NCBI RefSeq assembly: GCF_006345805.1
Contig: NC_042997.1
Span: 211,110,001 to 211,174,000 of the forward strand
Source of the DNA: Octopus sinensis
Lineage: Eukaryota
Reading direction: 5' to 3'
DNA length: 64,000 nt
Within the stretch, counting starts at the first letter, position 1. Every line of letters starts with the position of its first letter. A program made the translations under genes and the position numbers. Below, one piece after another: positions 6,716 through 45,293 of this stretch. Under the pieces are notes generated by a model that saw only the letters and a list, made by a program, of their open reading frames with translations, had not been told where the DNA came from and made no database searches.

Positions 6716-7465
6716 TCCGATGCCAGCGCCGCCCCGACTGGCTTCTGTGCCAGTGGGACATGAAAAGCAGCATCCAAACGTGGCCGATGCCAGCGCCGCC
6801 TTCACTGGCTTCTGTGCCGGTGGTACATGAAAAGCACCATCCGAACGTGGCCATTGCCAGCGCCGCCCCGACTGGCTTCTGTGCCGGTGGCACATGAAAA
6901 GCACCATCCGAACGTGGCCATTGCCAGTGCCGCCCCGACTGGCTTCTGTGCCGGTGGCACATGAAAAGCACCATCCGAACGTGGCCGTTGCCAGTGCCGC
7001 CTTCACTGGCTTCTGTGCCGGTGGCACATGAAAAGCACCATCTGAACGTGGCCATTGCCAGCGCCGCCCCGACTGGCTTCTGTGCCGGTGGCACATGAAA
7101 AGCACCATCCGAACGTGGCCATTGCCAGTGCCGCCCCGACTGGCTTCTGTGCCGGTGGCACATGAAAAGCACCATCCGAACATGGCCGTTGCCAGCACCG
7201 CCTTGGCTGGCTTCCGTGCCAGTGGCACGTTAAAAGCTCCAACCGATCGTGACCAATGCCGGACCCCCCTGGCACCTGTGCAGGTGGCACGTAAAAAGCA
7301 CCCACTACACTCACGGAGTGGTTGGCGTTAGGAAGGGCATCCAGCCATAGAAACACTGCCAGATCAGACTGGTGCCTGATGCAGCCTCCTGGCTTCTCAG
7401 ACCCCAGTCGAACCATCCAATCCATTCTAGCATGGAAAATGGACGTTAAATGATGATGATGATGA
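6716..7465 (+). repeat. RTE 3'-UTR tail carrying an expanded 67-bp tandem array (7 near-identical units plus diverged ones)
   Basis: The gcaccatccgaac motif (or close variant) recurs at 6767, 6834, 6901, 6968, 7035, 7102 and 7169 (period 67), then the standard tail ends in (GAT)n at ~7465. Confidence 0.92.
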
Positions 7466-7539
7466 CTGGGCATGTTTGACGACAGCCCAGTATTTACCCT
7501 GGTGTACATGGGGGCCATAGAATTGGTTCTCGAAAAGAA

Positions 7540-7711
7540 GAGGGAACAAGGCTACTGTGATGCAAATAATCTATTGATCTGCAACACCAACTTCAGGAAG
7601 CCAGCCAGCAACCTGATAACCTACCAATCAGGTGGTTATGCTAGCCAGATTGGTTACATTCTCACCAGGGAGCGGAATGTATGGTTGCTCTAAATACAAA
7701 GACCCTCTCAG
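7540..7711 (+). pseudogene. RTE LINE AP-endonuclease fragment (left part)
   Basis: CDANNLLICNTNFRKPASNLITYQSGGYASQIGYIL matches the APE 'NT.F.K...TY.SG...SQIDYIL' pattern; it continues at 9514 after the DNA transposon. Confidence 0.85.
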
Positions 7712-9508
7712 CACATTGTGCCCAGAGTGGGAATTTATCATTTTTGGAAGTTTTCCCCCTGATGTTTAAAATGCATATTTTCTGGTTCTCTAAACTCGAG
7801 ATTACAAAGCAAAAAACTTGAGTTTAAAATAATGTCTGGTTCAATTTTTCTAGCTCTTTAAAGTCAGCCAATTTAACGAAATTTACATTTTTTTTTGAGT
7901 ATTTTATGATCAAACATTTTCTTTCACAAAAAAGATTTTTAACCTCTGTTTGAACTTATTTAGAAGTATTTTTTATTGTCTTTCAGTCAAGCCACAGTTT
8001 AGAGTGCATAGGCCAACATAAATTTGAGAAAATAGGGGATGCATTAGAAATATCCAAATTTTTGGTAAAACCCCCTCAAATTTGATAATTTTTTTAAAAA
8101 GGACAAATTTTGACATATTAAGGGTTGACATATTTGACATCCTTAACATTTATATGTAAACTGTGGGAAAAAAAAATCAATTCAAAGGAGTTAAGAGAGC
8201 ATACAGAAAGTATAATTCCAATTTGGGTACCAAACATCAAAACCAACCAAAATTGGGTCAAATTGGTAATTATTGACCCCAACGTGATTAAACAGGTATG
8301 AAAACAGGAAACATAAAATGGACTCAAAACCTAATAACTTTCTTGAAATAATTGATCTTAAATGCATTTTTTTTAGTATTTAACCTATTTTATGGGGTAA
8401 AAATCTGATTAGGAAGGTGAGATTCTGGCTTGGAGGATTTTGCTCTGCTTACACTGAAATTGAAGAAGGGCTGAAATACGAGATAACAAAACGAAAGTAT
8501 TCTCAACACATCCCTGGATTGAAACTTTACCATAGTCTACCCCACCTCACATCATCCTCATCATCGTTTAACGTCCGTTTTCCATGCTGGCATGGTTTGG
8601 ATGGTTCAACTGGGGTCTGGGAAGCCAGGAGTCTGCACCAGGCTCCAGTCTCATCTGGCAGTGTTTCTACAGCTGGATGCCCTTCCTAATGCCAACCACT
8701 CCGTGAGTGTAGTGGGTGCCTTTACGTGCCAGGCGAGGCTGGCAATGGCCATGATCGGTTGGTGGTTTTTACGTGCCACCGACACAGAAGCCAGTCAAGC
8801 CGGCGCTGACATCGGCTACATACGGATGGTGCTTTTTAGGTGCCAGGGTAGGCTGGTAATGGCCATGATCGGTTGGTTCTTTTTACGTGCCACCGGCACG
8901 GAAGCCAGTCAAGGCAGCACCACACCTCACCACAAAGGAAAATACAATCAATCTCCCCTATGATTCACAAAGAAAATCCGAATCATTTGCACTAAATTGT
9001 GAAAACTGATCACTTATTATTCACAACAAATATTAAAGCGACAATGTCAAACAATAAATATGCGTAATATGGGCCCAGTCAGTGATTCGATTCTTGATTG
9101 TTCTTCTGTCAAAGCAGACACCTTCTTATGTTTTGAAGAGATGGGCTGTGTGACCAACTTCACCACAAACAGAATAACTTGGGCTGGGACATTCCAAAGC
9201 AGTTGCTGGATGCAACATGATGGACATTCTTCTGAAGATGTCATGGGTGTTATCTTTGATTGAAAGTTGGCGAGATCTTGCAGATAATCGTTTTTAACCA
9301 CAATACACCAAAAAGGCAATTTTGGTCAGTATGCCCTGATTTTGTTAATCCAAATCCCCATAGACAAAAAAACCCAATTAATCTTGGTTCCAGCTGATAG
9401 CCCTTAAAATTGTGGTTTAAATAAGCCCTCAACCACTATCCGGTGATTATTTTAACCTAAGATATGATTTTTTTTTTCCCCCGAAATAGCCAATCTGGGC
9501 ACAATGTG
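7712..9508. mobile_element. Non-autonomous DNA transposon with a Transib/RAG-like end signature
   Basis: TIRs CACATTGTGCCCAGAGTGG (7712-7730) and, on the reverse strand, CACATTGTGCCCAGATTGG (9508-9490). 5-bp TSD CTCAG (7707-7711) / CTCTG (9509-9513). Excision restores the RTE EN reading KTLSGEECIPQHRL. No transposase ORF is visible. Confidence 0.75.
8551..8922 (-). mobile_element. RTE tail element nested in the Transib-like element, 8-bp TSD
   Basis: TSD cacctcac at 8543-8550 and 8923-8930; standard tail sequence between them. Confidence 0.85.
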
Positions 9509-9513
9509 CTCTG

Positions 9514-10225
9514 GTGAAGAATGTATCCCTCAGCATAGACTAGACGTTAGTGACTTCAGACTCCAGGCCAGAAGGATGCCGAGAAGCAGGCCAAATCTGG
9601 AAAAGGTTTCAGAAGCTTATATATACTTCATAAATTTGGGGACATCCTAATTGAAAAATTTGGTGAGAGGGAGGTGGAGTTACAAAATTGTGACATTAGA
9701 GGGCAATTGAGAATTCCTGCAGGACAACTTGCTAAGTGCCACAGACCAAATCTGTGGGTGGTGCAAAGTCCCAACCAGAGCTTGGGTAATGTAGTGGTGA
9801 AACAATACTGTAGACAGGGCTATTAGAGCATAGAAACAGATCTGGAAAACCTGGGGAGCTGTATCAGATCGCCAGAAGGGAAGCTAGGAGACAGGTATAT
9901 CTAGCCAAGGGAGAAGCAGAAAAGAGGAAGTTTGCCTATGTTTAGTGATGCAAGGACCAAAGAACAGTGTGCAAGAGAAAATTGTGATGTCATAGGAGAG
10001 AAATGTGTCTGCATGGATGATAGTGCAGCTGCATTTAATGATTCTGCCAAGAAAGAGGCTTGCAGATGCCATTATGATAGACTGCTGAATGTGGAGAATG
10101 AATGGGAAGAGGAGAGTTTGCCAAAGGTTGACCCAATTGAGGGACAAGCTACCCGAATTGATAGTACCTTGGTAGATAAAGCAATTGACAGGGAAAGCCT
10201 CCAGCCTATCAGGAATCACTGCTAA
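9514..10225 (+). pseudogene. RTE LINE endonuclease C-terminus and linker toward the RT
   Basis: GEECIPQHRL at the start; ORF 9932..10225 HYDRLLNVENEWEEESLPKVDPIEG..LVDKAI; a shifted frame gives TGKASSLSGITA (KTGKAPGPSGI motif). Confidence 0.85.
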
Positions 10226-11103
10226 AGTGGATCTTTTTTTCTTCAAAGCTTGGTTCAAACGCTCTAATTGCTGACAGTAGACTTGAGCATTGATTGTTGC
10301 ATTAGGTGGTAACAATTCAAAGTGAATTACTCCTTTGCAATCCCACCAGATAGAGAGAAGAACCTTTTTTTCCCATGAAGTTCCCTTTCCGGTTGTGGTT
10401 GAGCTTTTTCCTTTTTACCAATCCACTGTTTACGACATTTAACATTTCGAAAGAAGATCCATTTTTCATCACCAGTCACAAGTCTATCCAAAAAGGGTGA
10501 AATGAGTTTGCGAGAATGGAGAGAAGAGCAGATGTCAACTCAGGATTTGTGGTTGCTTTTGGACAATTCATGAGGTACCCATTTTCCAAGTTTAGGAACC
10601 TTTCCAAGTTGTTGAAGATGATGATAAACAGTTGTATGGTTTGAACTAAGCTTTATTGCCAATTCTTCAACTGATAATGCAGGATTTTCTTCAAGTAATG
10701 CCTCAAGGAGCTTATCATCAAACTCAACTGGACGTCCTGTTCGATCTTCATCTTCAATGCTGAAATCTCCACTTCTGAATTTTGCAAACCATCTTCTACA
10801 AGTTCTTTCATTCAAGCATTCTTTCCCATAAACTGAGTGTATGTTTTGAGTCGCTTCTGCTGCAGAGTTTCCCTTTTTTGTACTCATAAAGCATTATGTG
10901 CCTTAAATGCTCTTTGGATACTTCCATAGGATTTTAATCAAAGAAATTTTAATTCTATTCTGTAAAACAATTTTTTATTAGTTTAAATATATAGAAATGT
11001 ATAAAAATAATTTTTAATTCCATTAGACATTCTAAAATACTATTAAATTTCATTCAATTTTAAAAAAGGTAAAATCGGACAGAACTTATGGGTTGACCTG
11101 ATA
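10221..11103 (-). mobile_element. Mariner transposon remnant (5' TIR plus 3'-truncated, frameshifted transposase)
   Basis: TIR-like tatcaggtcaacccataagttctgtccga at 11103-11075. Protein MEVSKEHLRHIMLYEYKKG/NSAAEAT..CRRWFAKF..GRP..WVPHEL..VTGDEKW..LLPPNATINAQVYCQQL, with a frameshift at ~10875 and a stop at 10540. Confidence 0.92.
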
Positions 11104-11834
11104 AATATGTTCCTAGTATGGACGAAACCTAGAGGGACCAAATTACACATGTAAAATGCAGAACTAAATTACTTGCCTGTTTTTGGCTCTTGTACTTCAC
11201 TAGTGATGACTAATAAGGATTGTGTCTAACATAATCAGAACACCTAAAATCTGAGAGGGGGTTTTGTCTATTAGATCAGATTGGAGCCCGATGCAGCCTC
11301 CTGGCTTCCCAGACCCCAGTTGAACCGTCCAACCCATGCCAATGATGATGATGATTGACTTCAGTTACTTCTCAGATACTTTAGTTTATTGAACCTAAAA
11401 GGATGAAAGGCGGTGCTGATCCCAATGGGATTTCTATTCAGATTTGAATAAAGGAGTAGAAGAAACACAACAAGGTATTTTGTCCAGCAAGTTTACCAAT
11501 CTTGTTTCAGATGAGTATGTTAGGCACAAGGCTACAAATTTGGGAAGAACAATATAGACTATTTAATTACCCCTTTGTACTTAAGTGGAATGCTTTGTGA
11601 TTTGAACATTGCACTGATGGTCTCAAGACTGCAGTTTTGAATCCCAGACTGGGCAGTGCATTATATCACATTGCTCCAGTTCATTCAGAGGTAAATGAGT
11701 AACCCTGCAACAGACTAGCATCCCATCCAGGTGTGGATGGGTCATTTTGATCACTTTTACACCATGGAAAGCAGGTAATTGGTCAGCTGTCCAGAGGTCG
11801 CTAAAGTTGATGAGGAGTGGCTCGTTAGAGCTGT

Positions 11835-12875
11835 TCAAGCCGTGTCAGTAAGGTGAGAGTCAGCCTTGAATACAAGATGGAGTTTACCAGGGACCAGTCC
11901 ACTCTTCTGCATCATAGTTCTCCAGGCCATAACAGAGCAATTCAAAACTGGATGCCCATGGGAAATGCTATATGCTGATGAGCTTGCTCTTATTGCAGAA
12001 TCTGAAGCAGAAGTGGAGAAGAAGTTTTGGGTCTCGAAGCAAAACCTGGAATCAATGAGCCTGAAAGTTAACTTAGCAAAGACTAAAGTTGTTATAAGCA
12101 AGAAAGCAGACAAGACTCCCCTTCCATCAGGTAGATGGAAAATGGTGGTGGTGGTGGTGGAGGTGGAGGTATGTAGGGAAGGGGTCTAAGCTATGGATGC
12201 ATAAGAGATGCAGTGGAATCGTAGGTAGGTTAACAGATGGGGTTGCTTTCATGTGTGGCAGATGTGCAGGAACAATAAGCACTAAGGGCACGAGGGACTT
12301 TGTCAAATGCCCAGGAGGCTCTCTTGAGGTAGTAAATAGTTTCTGCTATTTAGGTGACCAGATTAGTAAAGGGGGTGGATGCTCTGCAAGTATTGTTTCT
12401 AGAATAAGAATAGGGTGGAGGAAGTTCAGAGAGCTGCTACCTCTGTTGGCAACGAAAGGACTCTCAGAGTGAAAGGTAGATTGTATGATGCCTGTGTGCC
12501 AACGGCTGTATTACACGATAGGGGGACATGGGCTTTGACTGGAGAGGAATGAACATTGTATGCTTCATTGGATTTGCAACACGAGTGTGCATGACCAACA
12601 GAGCAGAACTGTATTGAGAGAAAAGTTGGGCATAAGAGGGACTGGAATGTGGCGTGCAGGAGAGGAGAATGTGGTGGTTTGGACTTGTGATGTGTCTGTG
12701 TGTGAAGAAGTGCCTGTCACTGAAGGTGGATGATACCTATGGGAGAAGGAGGCTGAGGAAGGCATGGGAGGAAGTGGTGAGGACTGATCTTAGGCTCACA
12801 GACGAAATGACAATGGACCAAAATATTTGGCACTATGAGGCTCTACCTGCCCACATTGGCAAAACTGAGGGCTAG
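11835..12875 (+). pseudogene. RTE reverse-transcriptase C-terminal half, disrupted
   Basis: PLLFxIV..CPWEMLYADELALIAES..KTKV; HKRCSG..CGRC; SFCYLGDQ..RIRIGWRKFRELLPLL; ERRMWWFG..GRRRLRKAWEEVV. Confidence 0.92.
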
Positions 12876-13411: not shown

Positions 13412-13442
<31 letters not shown>

Positions 13443-13642
13443 CTGTGTTTGCCCCCTAGCATTGCTTGACAACCGATGCTGGTGTGTTTACGTCCCCGTC
13501 ACTTAGCGGTTCGGCAAAAGAGACCGATAGAATAAGTACTGGGCTTACAAAAAATAAGTCCCAGGGTCGATTTGCTCGACTAAAGGCGGTGCTCCAGCAT
13601 GGCCGCAGTCAAATGACTGAAACAAGTAAAAGAGAAAAAGAG
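13249..13642 (+). mobile_element. tRNA-derived SINE (family A) with a central (TA)n(TG)n tract
   Basis: Head gagtggctgtgtggtaagtagcttgc..ggttccgggttcagtccc, then ccttgggcaagt-like core and tail gactgaaacaagtaaaagag. Other copies: 20175-20612, 30774-31430, 31815-32185(-), 38031-38492, 45069-45508, 55475-56140, 56520-56880(-), 59808-60568. Confidence 0.9.
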
Positions 13643-13772
13643 TATATATAATTTTCTAGATGGTGTAATTTAATTGTTCAATTTGAATTGATAAAAGGTG
13701 TTTTTTTCTAATTTATATGTGTGGTGGTTCTCTAGTCCTTATGCAGAGTCTGATCACCTCTTGTACTTACAC

Positions 13773-14085
13773 CTAAGATCCATCATGGTGTCTGATGTGG
13801 CTTTTTAGACCAGACAATGTATTAAAAGGACACCCACATAGATTGCATATCCAATGTGGACCAATAAGAGTTGCAGTTGAGTTCTGCTCTTTGTGGATCT
13901 TAAAATGTCTTTTGAGGCCTCCGTTAGATTTACAGACCTCATGGCATACACAGCATTGAAAGGTGTGCACAAATATACAGGTACAGTTGTTGGTGGAGGT
14001 TTGTTTTTCATGGGTCCTCAAATGAGATTTGAGTCCAGCCAAAGAAAGGTGTAATCTGACACAAACTGTGCACACATCATCACTG
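13773..14085 (-). pseudogene. Three C2H2 zinc fingers, open frame, at the LINE C-terminus
   Basis: CTVC..SLAGLKSHLRTH, CCVCHEVCKSNGGLKRHFKIH, CNLCGCPFNTLSGLKSHIRHH. No TGEKP linkers. The ORF start codon lies in an inserted tail repeat. Confidence 0.8.
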
Positions 14086-17000
14086 TTTAATGTCGGTTTT
14101 CCATGCTGGCATGTGTTGGACTGTTTGACAGGATCTGACAAACCAGACGACTTCACCAAGTTCTATTGCCTGCTTTGGCATGGTTTCTATAGCTGGATGA
14201 TCTTCCTAGCACCAACCATTTTACAGAGTGTATGGGGTGCTTTTTATGTGGCACCAGCACTGACAGGGTCACTAAAGTAACTTGCAAGACAAAACCCCGT
14301 CAGCTGGGAGTGGGGGTGGCTTTGTGCCAGTTGATGAGGTGCGCACTTATGTGCTCATATGTCCATATGTGTACTCTGTGGCTGTTGTAAAGTACATTCC
14401 TCCCACTGCTGTGATCTGTGACTGCCATTGTACTCTAGTAGCCACAATATTTACTAGTCATCGGATACCATTGTATCTCTTCGTGCTGGAATAGTAATAC
14501 ACTAACATCTTCTGTCATACATGTCAAGTGCTTTGCTATTAAACTAAACTGCCCAGTAACAAATTTTTCTGCAATTTTAGAACTTATAAATTTAGCTTCA
14601 TAAAATGCTAACGTTAAACTCAGAATATATACATCTGTATGTAATGGTTCTCAACTCACTTTGGAGTATAACCGCTTTCCTGTTGCAGTCTGTTACAAGT
14701 TTGATAGCATTTCTGCCATGGGCCCTCCAATAACTGCCTAGTTCTGAATTTGTTTTAAATTTTTAGCAATAAAGTGCATAATTTTGTCCAAATCACACCA
14801 ACGGTAGTGCCACCCTCATCCAAAAGGGATTTTTAGCCTTGTAGTAGATGAACATACCTTTAGACATAAATGACTGCAGTGTTCGACTGGTGTTGTTGGA
14901 ACTCTATACACATAAACACCTCATGCAAGTCTCCCAATGGGTGCACAAGTCTGCCTTTTAAAGTGTCATATGACCACAAACTCGATGGGCAAGATTATCT
15001 CTGGACTTTCTATCATGCTGAACATTCTTCACTTTTTTGGTCATTATGTTGCACTATTTGATGGGGGAATTTCAGTTCCTCAAACTGTGGACTGCCATTA
15101 GCTTCTGTTCAATATCAGATGTTCCCAAGGAACCGTCTTGTTGTTTAAGGATATAAAATTGTTACTGTAATGTCATGAAATTTCCGTTTTGTTTTTGTGT
15201 TGGGGTCACAACTAATTCTGTAAAGAAATGACTTTGGAAACCTTAAATCATCAAGATGAGTGACAGGATCCAACGATTGCATATATTAGATGAGAAGGCA
15301 AGCATCCATACTACAACATTTGTGTCAGGTGTAAAAGATTTCCATCTCATGTTTAATATATGTCTGAGAAATCTTGCATGTCTTGGATGAGTTTTTGCAA
15401 GGAACATCATCATCATCATCATCATCGTCGTTTAGCGTCCGTTTTCCATGCTAGCATGGGTTGATGATGTGAATGTCATAGAGGCAAACCTTGGGGAACA
15501 GCTTCAAATCCCTTTTTGAACTGATTCATTTTTCCTGTGTCCCAAGTACAATTTAAGCCTGGATAATTCTTAAATTGATTTTGGAATCTAAGCATTCTTT
15601 CCTGGAGACACAAGAAAATCCACTACATCAAGTCTGATCCCTTGGACAAATTCATCATCATCATCGTTTAATGTCCGCTTTCCATGCTAGCATGGGTTGG
15701 ACGATTTTTGACATTGGGCTGGCGAACCAGATGGCTGCACCAGGCTCCAGTCTTGATCTGGCAGAGTTTCTACAGCTGGATGCCCTTCCTAACGCCAACC
15801 ACTCCGAGAGTGTAGTGGGTGCTTTTTATGTGCCACTGGCACGGGGCCCAGTCAGGTGGTACTGGCAACAATCTCGCTCACTTTTACATATGTCTTTCCT
15901 GGAGAAGGTCTAAAACATCATCTTATTGTTCTTCAGGTTTATTGTTAAGCCCTGAAGCAGTACAGTCACTGGAGAAGAGGTTCTAGGGTTATAAAGGGCT
16001 TTGATTTAGAAACAATTCATAACCAGCAGTTTACTTGTTGTGCAATAGCTAAGATGCATCCATCACAGTCCTTAACCCTTTAGCATTTAAACCAGTCATC
16101 ATTACCATCATCATCATCGTCGTCATTGTCATCATTATCATTTAACATCTGTTTTCCATGCTGGCATGGGTTGGACAACTTGACAGGAGCTGGCAAGTCA
16201 GAAGCCTGCAATGAGCTCCACTGGCTGTTTCGGCATCAATTCTACAACTGGATGCCTTTCCTAATGCCAACCACTTTACAGAGTGGGTTGAATGCTTCCT
16301 ATGTGGCATCAGCATTGGTCCAGATATCCTGTCTGTTTTATGTTCAGTATGGCCAGATCTGGTCTCTTACACCTACTCTACAATGTCATTCTAAAATAAA
16401 CAATCACATCATTGAAATCTTGAAGCTACAAGATGATGCCTAATTCTAAATGAGCAATAAACTGGCCAAAGACATCTGAATGCCAAAGGGTCAAATATTC
16501 AAGTAGCTGTTGTAGAGCAAAGCTAAGAACTCACTTGGCGCAGAGGCAAACCGTCTTCGAATCAGTTCTCTTAGAAACCCCTTTTTAGTTTATACTTGTG
16601 TCAAGTTGGACAAACAAATCGACAAACTTAGGTGGCCGCCTCAACTTACCCAACACTCACCACTGTATCAAAGGGTTTCACAGGATCAATGAAAACTCAG
16701 CAGAAGGGAAGAAATCCCTGTTCATTTCTTCTGCAACAGTCTAATGCTTCTACCAAATCTAAATCCACATTGAGAGTAGGGGACAATGAGGGAATATCTG
16801 TCGGTAGTCTCAACAAGTGTTACAAGTTAAGGAAATACCATGGAAGTTACCAAATTTGCGCTTGGTGCCTTTTTTTCTTGTGCAGTAAAATCAGTGTAGC
16901 TGTGGAACTGGTGAATCATTCCATATGTTAACAGTTCTTGTGGTCACAGCCAATATATCCCCACCAAGCTTAATAACTTCAGTTGGTACATGCTCACTTC

Positions 17001-17330
17001 ATGCAGTTTTGACTTCCTCTGTCGTAGACTTATTATCCATTTCTTTACTAACATGGCACTGCAAAAGATTTTTCTGTGACTTATCTATTTTGGATGGATT
17101 GGGGAAAGAGGTTCTGTGGAATGCTTTATTGATCTCTTCAGAATCTGATGCTGAAAAGTATTTCTGATTACTGATTAAAACCTATCCATCTTTGAAATGT
17201 AGAGAAGCAGTGATTGATTGGTGAGGTTGAAATACTTGTTTTAACAGGCAGTACATATTCTTTGGTGTCTTTTTTGTGAAAGTCCAATTGAATATCTGTG
17301 GATCTGACTAACCACCACATGCTTGACGTT
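13773..17330 (-). pseudogene. Degenerate RTE-BovB-like LINE (RT plus C-terminal C2H2 finger array), interrupted by tail insertions
   Basis: Minus-strand remnants: SQCGFRFGRS (~16770), FIDPVKPFDTV (~16680; FIDLTKAFD motif), ARFLRHILNMRW (~15350), and C2H2 fingers at 13780-14980. Confidence 0.75.
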
Positions 17331-20300
17331 AAACAATGATGATTGGTGGGACATACAAAAATCACTGAGTACACTCCGTAAAGTGGTTGGTGTTAAGAAG
17401 GGCATCCAGCCATAGAAACCATGGCAGAACAGACAATTGGAACATGGTGTGGCTCCTGGCCTTGCCAACTCCAGTCAAACTGTCCAGTCCATGCCAGCAT
17501 GGAAAACGGACATTGGATGATGATGATGATGATGATATTTGTTGGCAACAAGCTGTAAAAGTAACTCAAAGGTCAAGGAGTTCTTACATGACACCCATCA
17601 TGCATAGTAAGTGATAAATCTGATAAGTACCTTGGACAAAATTCTGGACACTTGAGTCTCTTTTACACCTTTCTGCTGATTACAAAATAACAAAGATGTA
17701 GGTGAGGTCTTATTGTTAAGAAGCTAACTTTCCAATCATGTACTGTAAACCAGTACAACCTGTGTCAGTGGGGTAGAAAGGGCTCCTTAGCCGTAGTGAA
17801 GGCAATCTGTCTAGGGAGATAACCTTACAACAAATCCCTTGGTCCGTAGATTAGAAATACTGGGTTGACGTCCAGCGGGAACAGCTTTGTTTCATGGAGG
17901 AGGAAAGATCTTCTTTAGTGCTTGGTTGTACAATGCTTTCCAATGTGTGTAGTAGCGACACGCGCACACATTATTAACCATTTGAAAAAACTATGTCTCG
18001 ACCACAGTTGAACAATGATGATGATGCTTTTAAGTTCAGTCCCACTGTGTGGCACTTAGGCAGGTGACTTTCTGTCTTCCACTCTAGCCCTGGGTTGAGA
18101 GAAGCTGAAAGAATTGTATCTCACACACACATCTGTGTGTGTGTCTGTGTGTCAGTGTGTATATAACTTTGTTTTCATATGAGATGGTTGTAAACAAGAG
18201 CCACTGTCATGCAAGTGATGTTGTTTCTTTCTGGTCTTTCATAAAAGACATGTTTAACCATGGGGGAAACCTTGCTTGGAAACAGGAAAGGCAACCAGCT
18301 ACAGAAAATCGTATACAAAAGTGGACGTTAAAATAATGATGGTGTGTGTGTGTGACTAATGACTGAGACCTTTGGTGACATGCTGTGCTTGAGAAGTGAA
18401 ATCCTAGTTGTGGTGGGACCTGTGGCACGTAAAAAGTGCTTTTCGAGCATTGGGTCCCACAGAGGCAATGTGACCAATGCTGGTGTTGCATAACTAGCAC
18501 CCATGTTGATGGCATGTAAAAAAAAAACAACCTTTTGAGCATTGGGCCTCACAGAGGCAATGGCAAATGACCGAAACATTTGGCAATATGCTGGGCATGA
18601 AAAGAAGGTCCATCAAGCCGAGGGAAATCTAATCACTGGAGATACTTGTGTCACACAACAGGGACCTTCACCGATGGCATGCAAAAGCATCTGTTACGCT
18701 CTCAGAGTGATTGGCACTGAGGTCTGGTGCAACCCCTCAGCTCACCAACCCTGGTCAAGCTGTCCAACCCATGCCAGCATGAACAGTGGACATTAAATGA
18801 TAATGATACTGTATGTATATATATATGTGTGTGTGTGTGTAAATATATATATATAATGTTTGGTGTTAGGAAGGGCATCCAGCTGTAGAAACACTGCCAG
18901 ATCAGACTGGTGCCTGGTGCAGCCTCCTGGCTTCCCAGACCTCGGTCGAACCATCCAACCCATGCTAGCATGGAAAATGGACGTTAAACGATGATGATGA
19001 TGATATATATATATATATATATATGTAAATGTTTAGTTAAATATATTCAATGAGAATATTATACACTGAATTTACATTGAGTGCTCTATTGTATCAAAGT
19101 GTTAATACTATTAAAGTATTTATGTATTTAATATGAGTGATTATATATATATATATATATTGATAGAGAAGGCTCAGCAAGTAAAGTGAGACCACAGCCG
19201 TGACTGATGCCAGTGTCACATGACCAGCCCATTTAAAAATTTAAAAGTACCCTTGAATCATTGAGCAATACATGACACTTGATAAGACCTATTGAGTCAA
19301 GTAAAATCAAAATGGAAATTGTAGTTGTAGCTGATACCAGTGCCACCCGACTGGCACTTGTGCTGGTGGCACATAATAAGCACCATTCAAGCGTGGGTTG
19401 ATGTCAGTGGCCCCGACTGGCTCCTGTGCCGGTGGCACATAAAAGGCACTGCCCGAACATAGTTGATGCCAGTACTGCGTGATTGACTTCTGTGCCAGTA
19501 GCATGTAAAAGGCACCCACTACACTCTTGGAGTGGTTGGCATTAGGAAGGGCATCCAGCTGTAGAAACCATGCCAGACCAGATTGGAGCCTAGTGCAGCC
19601 TACTAGCTTGCCAGTCCCCAGTCAAACCGTCCAATCCATCCCAGCATGGAAAACAGACACTAAATGATGATGATGATGATGATATAGTTCTGCCAGATCA
19701 AGACTGGAGCCTGGTGCAGCCTTCTGGTTCGCCAGCCCACAATGAAACCATCCAACCCATGGTAGCATGGAAAGCGGATGTTAAACGACAATGATGATGA
19801 TTCCTGTTTTGCAAGTTACTTGGCACTTCACAAGTGCTGGTGGTATATAAAAAAAAAAACCCCAGTGCAGGGCACTGTGCTGTAGAGTAGTTAGTATTAG
19901 GGAGAGCATTGAACAGTAAAAAAGCATGCGGAAGCTGACATGGAGTACAATGCAAACCTGTGGCTTGGCGGATCCTGTCTAACCAACGAACTCCTACCAG
20001 CATGGAAAATGGATGTTAATGATGATATATAGTTTATAGATTAGAGACAAGTATTCTCCTTATAGAATACACTTTGTAGTGCTCAAGAGATACGAACTGG
20101 AGCAGGTAGGGGAGTAAATATAAGGATAAGCAAGTTGATATACAAATACATTTGATACAATTTTTTTACAGATAGGCGCAGGAGTGGCTGTGTGGTAAGT
20201 AGCTTGCTAACCAACCACATGGTTCCGGGTTCAGTCCCACTGCGTGGCATCTTGGGCAAGTGTCTTCTGCTATAGCTCCGGGCCGACCAATGGCTTGTGA

Positions 20301-20339
20301 GTGGATTTGGTAGATGGAAACTGAAAGAAGCCCGTCGTA

Positions 20340-20396
<57 letters not shown>

Positions 20397-20614
20397 ATGT
20401 GTTTGTGTGTCTGTGTTTGTCCCCCCAGCATTGCTTGACAACTGATGCTGGTGTGTTTACGTCCCCGTCACTTAGCAGTTCGGCAAAAGAGACCGAGAGA
20501 ATAAGTACTGGGCTTACAAAGAATAAGTCCCGGGGTCAATTTGCTCGACTAAAGGCGGTGCTCCAGCATGGCCGCAGTCAAATGACTGAAACAAGTAAAA
20601 GAGTAAAAAGAGAT

Positions 20615-21192
20615 AGGAGCACTCTGTCGGTTACAACGACGAGGGTCCCAGCTGATGCGATCAAGGGAACAGCTTGCTCGTGGAATTAACGTGCAAGTGG
20701 GTGAGCACTCCACAGACTCATGTACCCTTAACGTAGTTCTCAGGGAGATTCAGTGTGACTCATAGTGTGACCAGGCTGGCCTTTTGAAATACAGGTCCTA
20801 CTTGTTTTTGTCAGCTGAGTGGACTGGAGCAATGTGAAATAAAGTGACTGGATCAAGGGCACAATGCATCACCGGGAATTGAACTCACGACCTTATGATC
20901 ATGAATGGAATGCCCTAACCCATTTCTTTATTACCCACAAGGGGCTAAACACAGAGGGGACAAACAAGGACAGACATAGGTATTAAGTTGATTACATCGA
21001 CCCCAGTGCGTAACTGGTGCTTAATTTATCGACCCCAAAAGGATGAAAGGCAAAGTCGACCTCGACGGAATTCGAACTCACAACGTAACGGCAGACAAAA
21101 TACCGCAAAGCATTTCGCCCGGTGTGCTAACGCTTCTCCCAGCTCGCCGCCTTGACTAGGCAGATGGCCTAACCACTAGGCCCTGTGCCTTC
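20615..21192 (-). mobile_element. CORE-type tRNA SINE (family C), split by a SINE-B insertion at ~20918-21153
   Basis: ggagcactc.gtcggttac..gctgagtggactggagcaa..ggaattgaactcacgacc; cctaacc is repeated on both sides of the nested SINE-B. Other copies: ~5700-5905, 24658-24890, 45510-46090, 49516-49748, 59000-59322. Confidence 0.8.
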
Positions 21193-21255
21193 ACTTATAC
21201 AGCTGATGCACATATGTGTGCATATGCAAAAGAGTGTGACTTACACAGAATATAA

Positions 21256-21459
21256 ATGATATCAAGAATTAAAGGGATTGAGTAAGAGTTTTACGAGTCC
21301 AACAGCTGTTTCTGGGAGCTTGGTGGTCCAAAATAATGATTGTAACTTGATTTCATCATCAGATACCACCAACCTCCTTTATCAGGGAAGAATTTTACAA
21401 GTCCAACTGCTGTTGGATTCTTAAAACTCTTACTCAACCCTTTTCATCCCTGATGTCAT
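21256..21459. mobile_element. ~200-bp hairpin MITE
   Basis: aagggattgagtaagagttttacgagtccaacagc pairs with gctgttggattcttaaaactcttactcaaccctt; an inner IR ggagcttggtggt/accaccaacctcc is also present. Duplicate at 46152-46355. Confidence 0.75.
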
Positions 21460-21679
21460 ATATGCCCTGTGTAAGTTGGTTTTCTACAGCTGGATGCCCT
21501 TCCTGATGCCAACCACTCCAAGAGTGTAATGAATGCTTTTACATGTCACCATAACGGGTGCCATTTGCGTAACACCAGTATCTATCACAATTGCCATATT
21601 GCTTAGCTTGATGGATCTTCTGTTCAAGCACAACATTATGCCAAAGGTATTGGTTATTGCCTCCGTGAGGCCCAACACT

Positions 21680-21935
21680 CGATAGGAACTCAGCCACTTT
21701 GCCCCTGTGAGGCCCATCGCTCAAAAGGAACTCTGGTCACTTTGCCTATGTGAGACATGATGCTTGAAGGAACTCAGCCACTTTGCCTCTGGATGGCCTG
21801 ACACTTGAAAGGAACTCAGCCACTTTTGTCTCTTTCAGGCCCAACACTTGAAAGGAACTCAGCCACCTTTGTCTCTTTGAGGCCCAACACTTGAAAGGAA
21901 CTGAGCCACTTTTGTCTCTTTCAGGCCCAACACTT
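21680..21935. repeat. 43-bp minisatellite adjoining RTE ORF-end-like sequence
   Basis: Unit aaaggaactcagccacttttgtctctttcaggcccaacacttg, 3-4 good copies plus diverged ones; the adjacent ttgcctccgtgaggcccaacac reads VLGLTEA on the minus strand. Duplicate at ~46578-46830. Confidence 0.8.
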
Positions 21936-23003
21936 GATTCATAATAGTTAAAATAGTTACAGAGAGGCAGGAGAGGTCAGGTGATGAAGATATTGATAGG
22001 GGGGAAAGAAAATAGGAAGGTCCTGAACTTGTGAGCACCATGAATGATGAAGGGGTTTGTCCCAGAATCTCCTAAGTCTCCCTCTTCTAAAGGTTCCATT
22101 CAACACTCCTTTATACAGCTGTCAGCTTCCATCATATGCTCATAGAAGCATAATCTTTTCCCTTGTACACTGATTGCTCTTCTTTCGTCCAATTCTTCTC
22201 TCTGCTTATTAACCCTCCAATGTTCATGCAAACTAACAATATATGTGCAGTGAAGTGTATCTACTTAATTTCTTCCTACTCTTTGCAAATCCTCTCTCTT
22301 CAAGATCCATATCTCATTACGGTGCAGCATTGCACATGCAATATGATACATTCTTATCACTCTCTCTCTCTCTCTCTCACTCACACATTACTCCCCTTCC
22401 TCCATCACTCTCTTACACCAATCTCCCCCTGCCCTCACCCACTCCCATTGTACTGCAACTTCCCAAACACTTTACAAGTCATCAGCCCCTCTCCTGTCTC
22501 CCACTTCCAGTTGTGACTGACATGGCTACCTCACTAGTGTTGGTGCCTCAACATAAAGCAGCCAGTACACTCTATAAAGAGGTTGGAGACAATGTAAGGT
22601 GGAGAGCATTCTTTAGTCCTGTTGAGGGCATAACATCTTTAGTGGTGGTGCCAAACAAAGAATGCAGCCCCTGTACATGTGTGAAGTGGTTGGTATTGGG
22701 AAGGGCATCAACCAGCCAAATCAAGCATCCAAGCCCTGGGTTATTGGATCCTGTCAAACTGTTAAAGCCGTCCCAGTTTAGAGAGTGGATGCAAAATAAT
22801 AATAATAAACGTTACTACTAAAGGCACAAAGCCTGAAAGTTTGGGGAAAGGGGGCTAGTCGATTACATCTCCCCCCCCAATACCTCACTGGTACTTAATT
22901 AATCAACCCTGAAAGGTTGAAAGGCAAAGTCGACCTCGGTGGAATTTCAACTCAGAATGGAGCAACGGGTAAAATGTTGCTAATTATTTCTGTTAGCTTG
23001 CCA

Positions 23004-23925
23004 CATCATCATCATCATCACCAGTTAACGGCCGTTTTCCATGCTGGCATGGGTTGGATGGTTTGACTGGGGTCTGGGAAGCCATGGAGGCTGCACCAGG
23101 TTCCAGTCTGATCTGGCAGTGTTTCTACTGCTGGATACCCTTCCTAATGCCAACCACTCCAAAAGTGTAGTGAGTGCTTTTTACATGCTACCAGCATGGA
23201 AGCCAGTCAGGTGGTACTGGCATCGAATGGTGCTTTGTACGTGCTATCGGCACAAGAGCCAGTCGACCAATTGGGGGTGGGGATGGCATCTACGACGTTC
23301 AAATGGTGCTTTTTACGTGTCACTGGCATGGAAGCACTGACATCGGCCACAACTACAATTTCCATTTGATTGTGATTTGATTTTTGATTTTGATTTAGAT
23401 TTACTCAGTAGGTTTCCTCAAACCTATTGTTGCCCGACAATTTAAAGGTGCTTTTTAAATGGGCTGGTTATGCGACACTGGTGTAGGCTATCGCTGTGAT
23501 CTCACTTTCTATGTCAGGTCTTCTCAGTCACAGCATACCTCCAGAGGTCTCGGTCTTTCGTCATTGCCTCTGTGAGGCCCGTTTGAAGGTCATGCTTCAC
23601 CACCTCATCCCAGGTCTTCCTGGGTCTACTTCTTCCACAAGTACCCTCCACTGTTAGGGTGTGACACCTCTTCATGCAGCTCTCCTCATCCTTACACAGC
23701 ACATGACGATACCAGTGCAGCTGTCTCTCTTGTACACCACATTTCTCTCAGAGCGCTTACACTCAGTCATGTATGCACACTGACATTACACATCTAGCGG
23801 ATCATACTAACTTCATTTCATTCATGCCTATGCATGTCCTCCGCAGTCACGGCCCATGTTTCACTGCCATGGAGCATAGCAGTTCGCACACATGCATCAT
23901 ACAGTCTACCCTTCACTCTGAGCAA
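23004..23925 (-). mobile_element. 5'-truncated RTE (ORF C-terminus, (AAATC)n-like tract, hairpin modules, tail)
   Basis: ORF 23514..23702(-) GTCGRSRPRKTWDEVVKHDL..GLTEAMTKDRDLWRYAVTEKT. Duplicate at 47915-48854. Confidence 0.9.
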
Positions 23926-24154
23926 TAAAACAATAATAATCCTTTCTACTAGAGGCACAAGGCCTGAAATTTTGGGGAAGGGATTAAATCGATTACGTTG
24001 ACACCAGTGCGTAACTGGTACTTATTTCATTGATCCCGAGAGGATTAAAGGCAAAGTCAACCTCGGCAGAATTTGAACTCAGAATGTAGTGGCGGGCGAA
24101 ATGCTGCTGATCATTTTGTCCAGTTTGCTAGTGATTTTGCCAGCTTGTTGCCTT

Positions 24155-24231
24155 ATAATAATAATAATAATGATAATAATAATAATGATAATAATAATAA
24201 TGATAATAATAATAATGATAATAATATAATG

Positions 24232-24268
<37 letters not shown>

Positions 24269-24270
24269 TA
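24155..24270. repeat. (AAT)n/(GATAATAATAAT)n microsatellite, longer than its paralogue at ~49083-49122
   Basis: Direct reading. Confidence 0.95.
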
Positions 24271-25440
24271 ATCCTTTGTACTATTGGCACATGGCCTGAA
24301 ATTTGAGGGGAAGGGGGCTAGTCGATTACATGAACCCTAGTGTGTAACTTATACTTAATTTATCGACCCCGAGAGGGTGAAAGGCAAAGTCGGCCTTGGT
24401 GGAATTTGAACTCAGAAAGTTAAGCTGGATAAAATGTTGCTAAGCATTTCGTCCGGTGTGCTAACGATTCTGCCAGCTCGCCACCTTCAACAACAACAAT
24501 AATGTTGATGATGATGATGCGTGATACATAAACTGTCGTGATCAGCCGTCAGAGTTCGATATGAGAATGTTTGCTCCGCCTAAAACAGGAATTTATACAT
24601 ACGCACGCACCTAGTATTTATGTATGCACTTATCTTTACAATAAATTTTTATATGGATATGGAAGCACTCCGTCGGTTACGACAACGAGGGTTCCGGTTG
24701 ATCCGAATCAACGGAACAGCCTGCTTGTGAAATTAACGTGTAAGTGGCTGAGCACTCCACAGACATGTGTACCCTTAACGTAGTTCTCGGGGATATTCAG
24801 CGTGACACTCACAACGCCCGGTCTGGGAATTGAAACCGCGATCCTATGACCGCGAGTCCGCTGCCCAAACCACTGGGCCATTGCGCCTCCACAATTTTTT
24901 ATAAAATGGAATAAATATGGTGGAGGCTTGAGAATGATACAGTCGTAAATCGTCGTCTTACAAAACAAACAAGTTATACGTTAGTCTTTGGTTTCCTTTA
25001 ATTAAATAAATTAATCAATTAACGAAGAATTGTATCGATGACTGCAATTTTCTTTAGTTGAAGTGTCGATGATACATTCACAAGGAAATCGAATTTAGTG
25101 AAACGTAGGTGGCCCAGAATTATACGTGTGTGTGTGTTCTTAAGGATCGTTTTGGTCGATTGTGTGTCTAAATGCAAGCTTCTGCTTAATTCAGTGTGGT
25201 AACCTGTTGGAATTTAAACGGCCTATATTATTAATTGAGCTCTTAATTACTGTGGATATATGTATTATGTTTTGTTTTATGCAACACAACATCCCTCTCT
25301 TCTCTTTAATTAAAGAGAGGGATGATACATAAAACAAAACACAATTATATATATATATATATGATGATGATGACATATATATAATATATATATATATAAT
25401 ATATTATATATATATATATATATTAATATATATATATCTA

Positions 25441-25609
25441 GGGAGAATTCACGAAAAAAACAAAAGACGAAGACAGTTGGTGTAAACAACAAACAGATAA
25501 CGCTGGGGAAGCGAAAAAGTCTTTAACATTTCGAGCCTACACTCTTCCGCAGAAAGGAACAAGGAGAGAAAATAAAGAATATGTAGTGGCTAGCGATCTA
25601 TCATGGCGA

Positions 25610-25610
<1 letters not shown>
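25441..25610 (-). mobile_element. Putative Penelope-like terminal-repeat fragment
   Basis: Short AT-flanked fragment containing the hammerhead-like motif at 25521-25556; family assignment is by recalled motif only. Duplicate at 50261-50430. Confidence 0.55.
25521..25556 (-). ncRNA. Degenerate minimal type I hammerhead-like motif
   Basis: Minus strand CTTT-CTGCGGA-A-GAGT-GTAG-GCTC-GAAAT-GTT-AAAG. Stem I CTTT/AAAG; stem II GAG(T/C)/GCTC; core has A6->C. Confidence 0.6.
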
Positions 25611-25642
<32 letters not shown>

Positions 25643-26129
25643 ACATTAGAGGCTTCCATCATAGGAAAGCCTTGTGCTAGAAAGAGCAGTAGCAACTCAA
25701 ACCACTAATCTTTTTTTTGTACTAGGCCACTGGTAATAATAATTTCTATAATTCTTATTACACCTAATATATATATATATATATATACTATATATATATA
25801 TATATTATGACTACTAGATCAGACATGACTTGCGCCTATTGTGTTAAAATATCCTAGTGTTCTTTTAGTTGAAATACTGCCATTGTATTTCGTTCCTGTT
25901 TCTATACTACAGAAAGACTTCATTGCAGTTCCGAAGACACATTTGTTTTCATCATTTATTGTGCCTTCACCCATACACAACATGGTCGTAGCCCCCCCCC
26001 CCGCTGATCCCCCGCTACTTATGCGCGTGTCGTTGCTATTTTGGTCGTCTTTCATCGTCGCATGCACACACACACGCACGCAATATTGATACGGAATAGA
26101 ACCAAAGTGTAACTAATATATATATATAG

Positions 26130-26165
<36 letters not shown>

Positions 26166-26378
26166 CACGATAGTGTGTCTATAGCCAGCTGGAGGAGATA
26201 TCTTCCTGGGGCTACAAACTACAGTAGCATCCACCCTTAGGGGTTAGCCATATTCAAATGGCAAATATGCGTCACGATATATATATATATATATATATAT
26301 ACGCACACACATACTGTATTTATTATTCAGACATGAAACAAACTGTATGCAACTATATATATATATATACATACATAG

Positions 26379-26566
26379 TAGAGGGAAACCACTATGTGGA
26401 CACCCTTATGCTAGAAATAGATCCGCTATGGTCTTACCACTAAGAAATGTTCTCTAGAAAAATTAGCAAAACAACCGAAACGTAATTGAGCTAAACATTT
26501 CTTAGTGGTAAGACCATAGCGGATCTATTTCTAGCATAAGGGTGTCCACATAGTGGTTTCCCTCTA
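26379..26566. mobile_element. MITE with ~70-bp near-perfect TIRs
   Basis: tagagggaaaccactatgtggacacccttatgctagaaatagatccgctatggtcttaccactaagaaatgtt and its exact reverse complement, with a ~45-bp spacer. Duplicate at 51185-51370. Confidence 0.9.
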
Positions 26567-26691
26567 ATATGTATATAATGCAATTTTACTGAACTTTCAG
26601 TTTTTTTTATATGCTAGACCACTGGTGTGAAACCGATGTTAATTAAATTAATATCTAATTTCTTACCCTCATTTTAAATTTATACTATATA

Positions 26692-27177
26692 CTAGCAGTA
26701 TCGGCCCGGCGTTGCTCGGGTTGAAGGAAATCTATATAAGCATTTATAGATTATAGCCAAAAAGTAGCAAAAAAATGCATTAAAAATGGAAAAAATGATG
26801 GTAAATTTTTTTTAAAAATCGTTGACTCATCGTAGACATTTTAGAGAGTTACTTCCCTTATATAATAGCGAAAAATGCATTAAATGGAAAAAATGATGGT
26901 AAATTTTTTTTTAATCGTAGACTCATCGTAGACATTTTTAGAGAGTTACTTCCCTTATATAATAGCGAAAATGCATTAAAATGGAAAAATGATGGTAAAT
27001 TTTTTTTTTAAAAATCGTAGACTCATCGTAGACGCGCGCTAATACCCAGAAGGACTCGATATGAATCACGACTATAAGATACCCGGTTTTGGTTACACTG
27101 CACCGCAAATGTGGGAGTAGTTAGGAATCTAAATCGTAGGAGACAGACAGCACACACCTCACTTTTATATATAAAGA
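26692..27177 (-). mobile_element. Non-autonomous Helitron with an internal ~97-bp tandem repeat
   Basis: Minus strand starts A|TCTTTATATATAAAAG and ends with hairpin CCCGAGCAACGCCGGG plus CTAG|T. Duplicate at 51499-51895 has one fewer internal unit. Confidence 0.85.
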
Positions 27178-27485
27178 TTATTATATCTCAACATAGAAAG
27201 AAAATGCGAGAGGGGACAGGTTTTATTACATGGAACCAAAGTGTATGTAAGTGTGGGTGTGTGTGTGTATTAGAAAGAGAGTAATATAAACACACACACC
27301 ATGGTTTTTTATGGCAGATTGAAATCCAAATGTCTGTACTGCGTGTTTTAATTTCTGGTAATTTCCCATCCCACCAAACCGGTCCAAACTCCGACACACA
27401 CACACACACCCGATATTCGTTTTTTTTTTTTATATCGTCTCGGCTCTAGAACCTTCTACCATCCTACCATACACACAAATACATG

Positions 27486-27748
27486 GTGCTACTGTCGAAC
27501 AGAGGTCCCGGTGCGCACACGCGCAGTCGCGCATCCGCGCTAGCCAGCCGTGACTAGTCGATCCTACAACGACTACCGAGCAAAGTAAACACTAAATAAA
27601 TAATTTTTGTTAAACAAAATAAATAAAACACAAAAACACAAAGTAAATAACACAAAAACACAAAGTAAGGATCGACTAGTCACGACTAGTTGGCGCGGAT
27701 GCGCGTGTACGCGAGTGCGCGCACCGGACCACTGTTCTCAAGTAGTAC
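27486..27748. mobile_element. CpG-rich inverted-repeat element (MITE-like) with an (acacaaaa)-rich core
   Basis: gaacag..cggtgcgcac..gcgcatccgcgc..gtgactagtcgatcct pairs with aggatcgactagtcac..gcgcggatgcgc..gcgcaccgga..ctgttc. Duplicate at 52212-52457. Confidence 0.7.
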
Positions 27749-30700: not shown

Positions 30701-32805
30701 TTTGACATTTGAAAAAAATTCCAGCATATTTTTATAATTAAATATTAGGAATTGCATAAAAAAATTAAGATATGGCAGGAGTGGTGTGTGGGTAAGAAGC
30801 TTACTTCCCAACCGCATGGTTCTGGGTTCAGTCCCACTGTGTGGCACCTTGGGCAAGTGTCTTCTACTATAACCTCAGGCTGACCAAGCCTTGTGAGTGG
30901 ATTTGGTAGATGGAACTGAAAGAAGCTTATCATCATCATCATCGTTTAACATCCTCTTTTCCATGCTGGCATGGTTGGACGGTTCGACCGGGGATCTGGG
31001 AACTAGGCTCCAGTCTGATCTAGCAGTGTTTCTACAGCTGGATGCTCTTCCTAACGCCAACCACTCCGTGAGTGTAGTGGGTGCTTTTTACGTGCCACTG
31101 GCACAGGATCCAGGCGAGGCTGGCAACGGCCACAATTGGTTGGTGCTTTTTACATGCCACCGGCACTGGTATCACAACTACAATTTCCATTGATTTTTTT
31201 ATATAACGTATATATTTTATGTGTGTCTGTGCTTGTCTCTCTCACCATTGCTTCACAACCAATGTTGATGTACTTGCGTCCTCATAACTTAGTGGTTTGG
31301 CAAAAGAGACCGATAGAATAAGTACTAGGTTTACAAAGAATAAGTCCTGGGGTCGATTTGTTCGACTAAAGCAGTGCTCCACCAGCATGGCCGCAGTCAA
31401 ATGACTGAAACAAGTAAAAGAATAAAAGAATAATAGAAACACATTTGGTGCATTGAAGAAGTACAAGCAATTTTGTTTGCAGATAAATTTTACCAAAAAA
31501 TCTTCTGTGGACCTTTGAAGGGTCATATGGATTGACCCCAGTTGAGCAAATTGGATAGAAGTAAACAAGTCCAACCACCAGGATGGCTTGTTTGCTGTAG
31601 CCATGGTCTGGAGAAGGCTTTTCATGAAGTACCGTAACGTATCACAAGCTACATGCGTCTTGCGAAAGGTCTTCTCCAGAATCTGGGAGTCACTATGGGA
31701 AACCTGATTTAGGCCAGGAGACCCTTCCACTTCATGGAACCGACACCGATCCTTTGACATTCTCCCCCCCACACACTCCCTCTTGTAAAATTTTTAAATA
31801 AATTAAAAACTATACTCTACTCTTTTACTTTTTTCAGTCATATGATTGTGGCCATACTGGAGCACCGCCTTTAGTCGAGCAAATCACCCCCAGGACTTAT
31901 TCTTTGTGAGCCCATACTTATTCTTCGGTTTCCTTTTTGCCGAACTGCTAAGTTTCGGGGACATAACACACCCAGCATTGGTTGTCAAGTGATATTGAGG
32001 AACAAACACAGACACACCACGACGGGCTTCCTTCAGTTTCCACCCACCAAATCCACTCACAAGCTTTGTTCAGCCTGAGGCTATAGAAGAAGACACTTGC
32101 CCAGGTGCCACACACAGTGGGACTGAACCCGAACCATGTGGGTTGGTAAGCAAGGCTACTTACCACACAGCCACCTTCCTGCACCTGTAGTGAATAAAAA
32201 TTTCCTTGATTTAAAATACTTCCAGCATATTTTTATGCTGTTATGTTTTCGAAAAGAAATATTTAAAGAAACTTAATGAAACACTTAATGAAATTGATAT
32301 CAATCCACTTTTGCTGTTTCCTACTCTCTCTCTCTCTCTCCCTTGCTCTTCCCTCTGGCTGGGTTGCCAAGTCTCCTCTACAGAAGCACACCTATTTCTG
32401 CCCTCATTCTTCGTCACTCTCTCTCTCTCTCTCTGTCTTTTTCTCTTGTTTTTCCCTCTGACCAGGTAACCAAGTATCTCCTTTACATCAACATAATTCC
32501 TTTTCTTGCAAGGTACTTGGTGACCCTGCCACTGCTAGTGCTACATTAAAAGCATCCAGTCCACACTGTAAAGCAGTTGGCATTTGGAAGGGCGTCCAGC
32601 TGTAAAAAATCATGTCAAAACTAACCTCATCTGTGCTAGTGCCATGTAAAAAGCTCTGAGTCCACTCTGCAGAGTGGTTGGTGTTAGGAAGGGCATCCAG
32701 CTGTAAAGACCCTGTCGAAACCGACACACAGGGTAGTTTTTCTCCCTGGCCAGCTCCTGTCAACTGTCCTACTCATCATGGAAGATGGACATTAAACTAT
32801 GATAA

Positions 32806-38243: not shown

Positions 38244-38283
<40 letters not shown>

Positions 38284-43725: not shown

Positions 43726-43768
<43 letters not shown>

Positions 43769-45242: not shown

Positions 45243-45293
<51 letters not shown>

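Follow-up and report, generated by a model that had tools for sequence, protein, structure and literature searches.

A CAC-tipped non-autonomous DNA transposon relic, plausibly of the Transib superfamily, within a decayed RTE-like retrotransposon of Octopus sinensis

We analysed a stretch of 64,000 nucleotides (nt) of the Octopus sinensis genome (NCBI RefSeq assembly GCF_006345805.1, contig NC_042997.1, positions 211,110,001 to 211,174,000 of the forward strand; hereafter the window, with position 1 as its first letter). In the window, a decayed retrotransposon copy encoding an endonuclease (EN) and a reverse transcriptase (RT) is interrupted by an element that is bounded by terminal inverted repeats (TIRs) starting with CAC and flanked by a putative target-site duplication (TSD), and that contains a repeat resembling a short interspersed nuclear element (SINE). 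The features at this locus are as follows.

7466..7711, + strand: host retrotransposon, left part; C-terminal end of the APE-type endonuclease of a decayed EN+RT (RTE-like) element
7707..7711, no strand: putative TSD, left copy, CTCAG (CTNAG palindrome)
7712..9508, no strand: inserted element, 1,797 bp at present, non-coding
7712..7730, + strand: left TIR, CACATTGTGCCCAGAGTGG, with heptamer CACATTG
7731..7739, + strand: sequence at the left nonamer position, GAATTTATC, 12 nt after the left heptamer; best match there, 5/9
7751..7759, + strand: subterminal motif TTTTCCCCC, left copy, one of two in the window
8550..8919, - strand: nested SINE-like repeat of 370 bp, a later insertion, related to >50 window fragments at 72-92% identity
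9466..9477, - strand: A10TC tract, read inward; the A-run begins 24 nt after the right heptamer
9474..9482, + strand: subterminal motif TTTTCCCCC, right copy, oriented as the left copy (direct)
9490..9508, - strand: right TIR, reverse complement CACATTGTGCCCAGATTGG
9509..9513, no strand: putative TSD, right copy, CTCTG
9514..12634, + strand: host retrotransposon, right part; (G)EECIPQHRL..., linker, reverse transcriptase

Full-length EN+RT retrotransposon proteins were gathered with P0001 as query and mapped on the window by tblastn. Protein P0003, which carries the domains Exo_endo_phos (residues 29-240) and RVT_1 (residues 551-755), aligned to the + strand in successive segments (residues 170-246 to 7468-7690, 254-374 to 9516-9875, 417-490 to 9965-10186 and 689-951 to 11896-12634), and P0003, P0007 and P0010 were all colinear with the host element of the window. 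The reverse transcriptase of the host is marked by YADE at about 11.9-12.1 kb and by an RVT_1 match at ~11.9 kb, and the right part as a whole is decayed and broken by other insertions, including a mariner fragment. The latter (9887-10315, - strand) is a partial Transposase_1 domain (PF01359, E = 8e-07) located inside the same retrotransposon copy, downstream of the element. As judged from these alignments, the host appears to be an RTE-like retrotransposon, in which one open reading frame (ORF) encoded an APE-type endonuclease and, after it, a reverse transcriptase, in the same order as in known members; among named proteins, a chimeric UniRef entry from Octopus bimaculoides is closest to it (74% identity over 54 aa). 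Other EN+RT (RTE-like) fragments of the window lie at 34148-35404 (+), 23529-23931 (-) and 48510-48860 (-), the last two being paralogues within a segmental duplication. These fragments comprise RT and C-terminal parts only, and none of the three covers the endonuclease region for an empty-site comparison.

The two ends of the element (7712-7730 and 9490-9508) match at 18 of 19 positions, both starting with CAC, which upholds the 19-bp TIR described in a first-pass annotation of this DNA; the termini read CACATTGTGCCCAGA. The similarity between the left and right ends goes on weakly inward, to ~7736 (about 25 nt). An inverted repeat of 19 nt whose arms lie within 5 kb of each other and differ at no more than one position arises by chance ~0.2 times per 64 kb (Markov shuffles), so that the repeat by itself is weak evidence and its context decides. 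Specifically, the P0003 residues left unaligned at the break correspond to only 21 nt before 7712 and 7 nt after 9508, and the repeat tips therefore coincide with the break in the retrotransposon alignment. The window contains 174 CAC...GTG inverted pairs, among which only the 7712/9508 pair has 5-nt flanks that agree at four or more bases, and no other such pair in the window has a 3- or 5-bp duplication. Because both repeat tips coincide with the alignment break and the flanks match at four of five bases, a chance origin is very unlikely. The segment 7712-9508 is a real insertion of a TIR-bounded, non-autonomous DNA transposon with the tips CAC...GTG, as had been proposed, and its limits are exact to within 5 ambiguous bases. 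Without the nested repeat, the element is AT-rich, with 33.6% GC vs 41.9% in the whole window.

The family to which such an element belongs depends on how many bases were duplicated upon insertion. The flanks CTCAG and CTCTG match at 4/5 bases in this single copy, and with symmetric tips the other duplication lengths give matches of 0/2, 1/3, 0/4, 1/6, 4/7, 2/8 and 3/9 for 2, 3, 4, 6, 7, 8 and 9 nt, respectively. The reading frame of the host offers a second measure. Between QxDYIL and GE(E)C, the spacing is 16 residues in 41/42 related proteins (21/22 distinct sequences). Frame A of the window runs QIGYIL-TRERNVWLL until it meets a stop; the left part of the host follows frame A up to ...QIGYILTRERNVWLL and then frame C, which reads NTKTLS to base 7710, with base 7711 opening the next codon. 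Passing from frame A to frame C requires a separate 1-nt deletion ~20 nt upstream, in ...CTC-TAAAT..., probably within an A-run. Given this deletion, removal of 5 nt yields the 16 residues TRERNVWLL?NTKTLS and, after them, G(g/gt)EEC, where the slash marks the join. Joining 7711 to 9514 gives ...ALNTKTLSGEECIPQHRLDVSDF, and the translation across the join, ...NTKTLSGEECIPQHRLDVSDFRL (NTKTLS/GEECIPQHRL), aligns by BLASTP with P0001 (...SNVKVILGEECASQHRLLVGDFRV) without a gap. The earlier statement that removal of the element rejoins this endonuclease motif is thus borne out, and the join also restores the 16-residue spacing of the relatives, but the added claim that the rejoined motif fixes both ends was overstated, since the frame needs the independent upstream deletion.

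Removal of 4 nt instead of 5 keeps frame A throughout (...LL, a stop, then IQRPSQGEEC) and dispenses with the extra deletion, and a hidden Markov model (HMM) offers no decision, scoring 58.3 bits when 4 nt are removed (a single frame) and 36.5 + 23.8 bits when 5 nt are removed (two frames). In the 4-nt version, however, no conserved position is matched and the flanks TCAG and CTCT agree at 0/4, whereas the N, K and L of frame C coincide with positions that the relatives conserve as [ND]-x-K-[VI]-[IVL]. The LL-K-[DN] pattern agrees with that of the closest relative, P0003 (VRSRDRRLLKDV...), the LL-?-N of the window paralleling the LLKD of P0003 (VRSRDRRLLKDVNAWS). On this residue-level comparison, we accept a net surplus of 5 nt at the junction, which the retrotransposon relatives make very probable.

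How these five bases divide between element and duplication is a separate matter, because the inverted repeat extends 2 nt outward past CAC (AG/CT) and the boundary between TIR and TSD can be drawn in more than one place. The extension is the expected product of a palindromic CTNAG target. Three partitions can be considered: (i) the tips CAC...GTG with CTCAG/CTCTG, 4/5; (ii) AGCAC...GTG with CTC/CTC (7707-7709 / 9509-9511), a perfect 3/3; and (iii) one extra base at either tip with a 4-nt duplication, 3/4. Partitions (ii) and (iii) would point to other lineages of the CACTA/Mirage/Chapaev (CMC) group. Partition (i) alone has symmetric canonical tips, at the cost of one substitution in an old insertion. 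For the TSD reported in the first-pass annotation, the flanking letters are therefore as given, and the 5-bp duplication itself rests on one imperfect copy to which other partitions can be applied.

The insertion is old. This follows from the single mismatches in the TIR and in the duplication, from the nested SINE-like copy, whose own relatives match it at only ~72-92% identity, and from a host retrotransposon full of stops; no living autonomous partner is implied by so old a copy. The nested repeat is flanked by its own 10-bp duplication, CCCCACCTCA (8540-8549) and CCACACCTCA (8920-8929), so that the original element measured ~1,417 bp and predates the SINE-like insertion. The SINE-like repeat is very abundant in the window (6717-7465, 8550-8919 and >50 other places) and combines a conserved ~160-bp section, which finishes with a (GAT)n-like tail, with a variable tandem array of 67-bp units, of which 8.8 are present at 6721-7302. 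Searches of the window and the region with Rfam and ARAGORN yielded no matches at all, and so no tRNA-like one for this repeat. It probably corresponds to the SINE classes dominating octopus genomes (Marino et al. 2022, PMC8967140), and the repeat content of the window, with one dominant SINE and with RTE-type long interspersed nuclear elements, is in keeping with an octopus.

The element has no detectable coding content. No Pfam domain was found in its six frames, and no homologues were found among 5.8 billion proteins when the 21 stop-to-stop segments of its interior that reach 38 aa or more were concatenated into one query; the interior ORFs of the element are likewise absent from the protein collection. 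Neither the element nor the window yielded any remnant of RAG1L or RAG2L. The window contains no ORF for a RAG1-core-homologous transposase (~700 aa), and the only transposase elsewhere in it is the mariner Transposase_1 fragment. Within the 64-kb window there are no further copies, both halves of the element being single-copy, and a TIR pattern search of the window allowing 3 mismatches gave chance-level matches only. The 19-mer TIR had 0 matches in viral contigs and 5 in metagenome contigs, close to the chance expectation and none with a paired end or further similarity, and a literature search for the TIR string returned primers and unrelated sequences only.

Lineages of the CACTA/Mirage/Chapaev/Transib (CMCT) clade share CA..TG termini, with CAC...GTG as a hallmark, and duplications of 2-5 bp. 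In the Transib consensus TIR a spacer of 23 nt separates CACAATG from AAAAAAATC, and the duplications are 5 bp long (PMC1131882), and the Repbase rule for non-autonomous elements asks for the same TSD length as a classified family and at most one mismatch to it at terminal positions 1-11 (PMC4455052). At both ends of the octopus element the heptamer is CACATTG, which matches 6/7 bases of the Transib CACAATG and, as noted earlier, also 6/7 of CACAGTG, the heptamer of the recombination signal sequence (RSS). The putative target CTNAG is palindromic over its 5 bp, as are CASTG and CAWTG, into which two mosquito Transib-N families are reported to insert (PMC1131882). At the right end, the A10 tract indeed starts 24 nt after the heptamer, and A10TC ends in the nine bases AAAAAAATC, a perfect copy of the Transib nonamer consensus, whose spacer is then 27. 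Empirically, a run of nine or more A that begins within a 5-nt window at one end or the other has a chance of ~0.0015, a post hoc figure.

Given a net surplus of five bases, Transib alone fits among the described superfamilies with CAC tips. The 5 extra junction bases, the CACATTG heptamer and the A10TC tract 24 nt inside the right end together favour the view that the element is a relic of a non-autonomous cut-and-paste CMCT transposon, and probably one of the Transib superfamily, a plausible assignment drawn from the termini and flanks of one old copy, which cannot prove membership. The described non-autonomous Transib families (Transib-N1_AG, Transib-N2_AG and TransibN1_SP; PMC1131882) resemble it in the CAC...GTG tips, in a heptamer one base away from CACAATG, in the probable 5-bp duplication and the palindromic form of its 5-bp target, in an A-rich, nonamer-like block ~23-27 nt inside one end and in the lack of coding capacity.

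Several observations weigh against this assignment. The element is represented by a single copy with an imperfect (4/5) duplication, unlike the families just named. Their spacer is 23, whereas here the A-run lies at 24 and the exact nonamer at 27, and the other end has no A-rich block: as the first-pass annotation had stated, a convincing nonamer is missing at the left end, where the best sequence at 12 nt, GAATTTATC, agrees with the Transib consensus at a non-significant 5/9. Transib target sites are typically GC-rich (PMC1131882), whereas the 35-bp target region here has 40% GC vs 42% for the window (60% in the pentamer); GC-richness is a preference and not a strict criterion. Finally, the host is an octopus, in which Transib is not annotated: a RepeatModeler/RepeatMasker survey gives a value of 0 for CMC-Transib in both Octopus bimaculoides and O. 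vulgaris, with CMC-Chapaev-3 and CMC-EnSpm present (Marino et al. 2022, Table S2, PMC8967140), and a mollusc-wide survey of DDE transposases found a single Transib element (PMC10294476). In the same annotation, CMC-Transib is present in two squids, accounting for 0.20% of repeat copies in Architeuthis dux and 0.05% in Euprymna scolopes (PMC8967140, Table S2). The zeros in octopus and the lone mollusc Transib lower the prior, and the assignment to Transib is kept at the level of probable with this taken into account.

The alternative that survives best assigns the element, again as non-autonomous, to a different CMC lineage (EnSpm/CACTA, Chapaev or Mirage); the apparent 5-bp match would then consist of a CTC duplication of 3 bp and two bases agreeing by chance, or of a 4-bp duplication in which one base differs. 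Such an origin would agree with the range of duplications of 2-5 bp across the clade, with the invariable CAC/GTG tips and 3-4-bp duplications of Chapaev, with the perfect CTC/CTC match when the left end is read as AGCAC, and with the annotation of octopus genomes, which has CMC-EnSpm and CMC-Chapaev-3, the latter the most abundant CMC lineage in the published cephalopod annotation, but 0 for CMC-Transib (PMC8967140). Symmetric CAC...GTG tips, however, leave flank matches of only 0/2, 1/3 and 0/4, the perfect 3-bp reading leaves two unexplained bases at one tip only, and no further CAC...GTG pair with a 3-bp duplication occurs in the window. Chapaev3 elements share short TIRs and abundant non-autonomous derivatives with the present one, but they make 3-bp TWA duplications, inserting between A and T (PMC4079192; PMC3014272), unlike the CTCAG/CTCTG seen here; the 3-nt flanks are CAG and CTC, which do not match each other and contain no TWA, and a Chapaev3 reading was rejected. 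We regard a CMC lineage other than Transib as possible but unlikely.

Less likely still is a different or undescribed superfamily with 5-bp duplications, such as hAT5, or a repeat that by coincidence borders an unrelated insertion or rearrangement. Much of the octopus repeat content is unclassified (PMC8967140, Table S1), hAT5 families do make 5-bp duplications, and the chance rate of a 19-mer repeat given above is not negligible. This qualifies the earlier use of CAC tips plus a 5-bp TSD as diagnostic, which singles out Transib among superfamilies with CAC tips and has to be complemented by the third terminal base: in hAT elements this base is always G (PMC1131882), but it is C here. Furthermore, hAT-hAT5 is 0 in both octopus genomes (PMC8967140), and coincidence is countered by the position of both tips exactly at the retrotransposon alignment break, together with the 4/5 flank match. 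A hAT reading with CAG/GAG tips was rejected as it results in no 5- or 8-bp duplication, as was a solo long terminal repeat, because the tips are CA...TG and not TG...CA.

The RAG half of the original Transib/RAG-like label fares worst: a non-autonomous derivative of a RAG1L-RAG2L (ProtoRAG-type, RAGL) transposon is very improbable, for although RAGL transposons have CAC tips and 5-bp duplications, and transposons and a few non-autonomous elements of this type are known in oysters and mussels (PMC7204232), the protostome TIR consensus CACTWMCAAACKTYKBB has an A-rich TR2 at positions 8-10 (PMC7204232), whereas the element TIR, CACATTGTGCCCAGAGT, shares CAC and little more (positions 4-17 are ATTGTGCCCAGAGT, with TGC and not AAA at 8-10), RAGL-B TIRs lack an A-rich nonamer such as that of the right end, and no RAG1L/RAG2L remnant lies nearby.

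Under the Transib assignment, a DDE transposase supplied in trans would have recognized the CAC-tipped inverted ends and excised the element, possibly through nick-and-hairpin cleavage at the border between flank and heptamer, by analogy with Transib and RAG. The element would then have integrated into CTCAG (or CTCTG) where an RTE-like retrotransposon that was already in place codes for its endonuclease, and repair of the 5-nt staggered cut would have doubled the pentamer. Later, one duplicated base would have mutated, the SINE-like repeat would have entered the element and the whole would have decayed. Both the type of transposase and mobilization in trans are suggested here by comparison with better-known relatives.

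The right end also resembles the 23-RSS of V(D)J recombination, with a heptamer 6/7 identical to CACAGTG, a ~24-nt spacer and an A-rich nonamer position. Unlike the 23-RSS, it is a transposon end and not a recombination signal, and the likeness is that already known for Transib ends. A further-reaching possibility is that the element represents a true Transib relic in octopods with RSS-like asymmetric ends (heptamer-12-GAATTTATC vs heptamer-24/27-A-rich nonamer), and thus a 12/23-type Transib family outside insects; we consider this doubtful.

Two short motifs recur near the ends. TTTTCCCCC occurs just twice in the whole window, both times in the element and on the same strand, direct and not inverted relative to the TIRs. 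GTTTAAAAT is found at 7764 and 7822, with its complement near 9449, ~53 nt from each end. Both may be candidate transposase-binding motifs, or chance occurrences.

Other features of the window lie apart from the element. A direct segmental duplication of ~18.9 kb links 13432-32305 and 38281-57002 (94-97% identity, starts ~24.85 kb apart), and the element is outside it. Near-perfect, hairpin-like short inverted repeats occur at 26390-26555 and 51195-51359 (~165 bp), which are paralogues within the segmental duplication, and at 62305-62643 (~340 bp); they may be elements resembling miniature inverted-repeat transposable elements. A tandem-like repeated block occupies 63092-64000, with self-matches offset by ~60-210 bp at 90-93% identity.

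There is no indication here of a RAG-like element or of current activity, and the find is a modest and fairly ordinary one, a further element of an already known type. Its bearing on the origins of V(D)J recombination is only general, as for every Transib end. If the element is a true Transib, a RAG1-core-type transposase would once have been active in the octopod lineage, and the patchy mollusc record of the superfamily would be extended. The element would then also serve as a seed for finding its family, and any autonomous copy, in cephalopod genomes.

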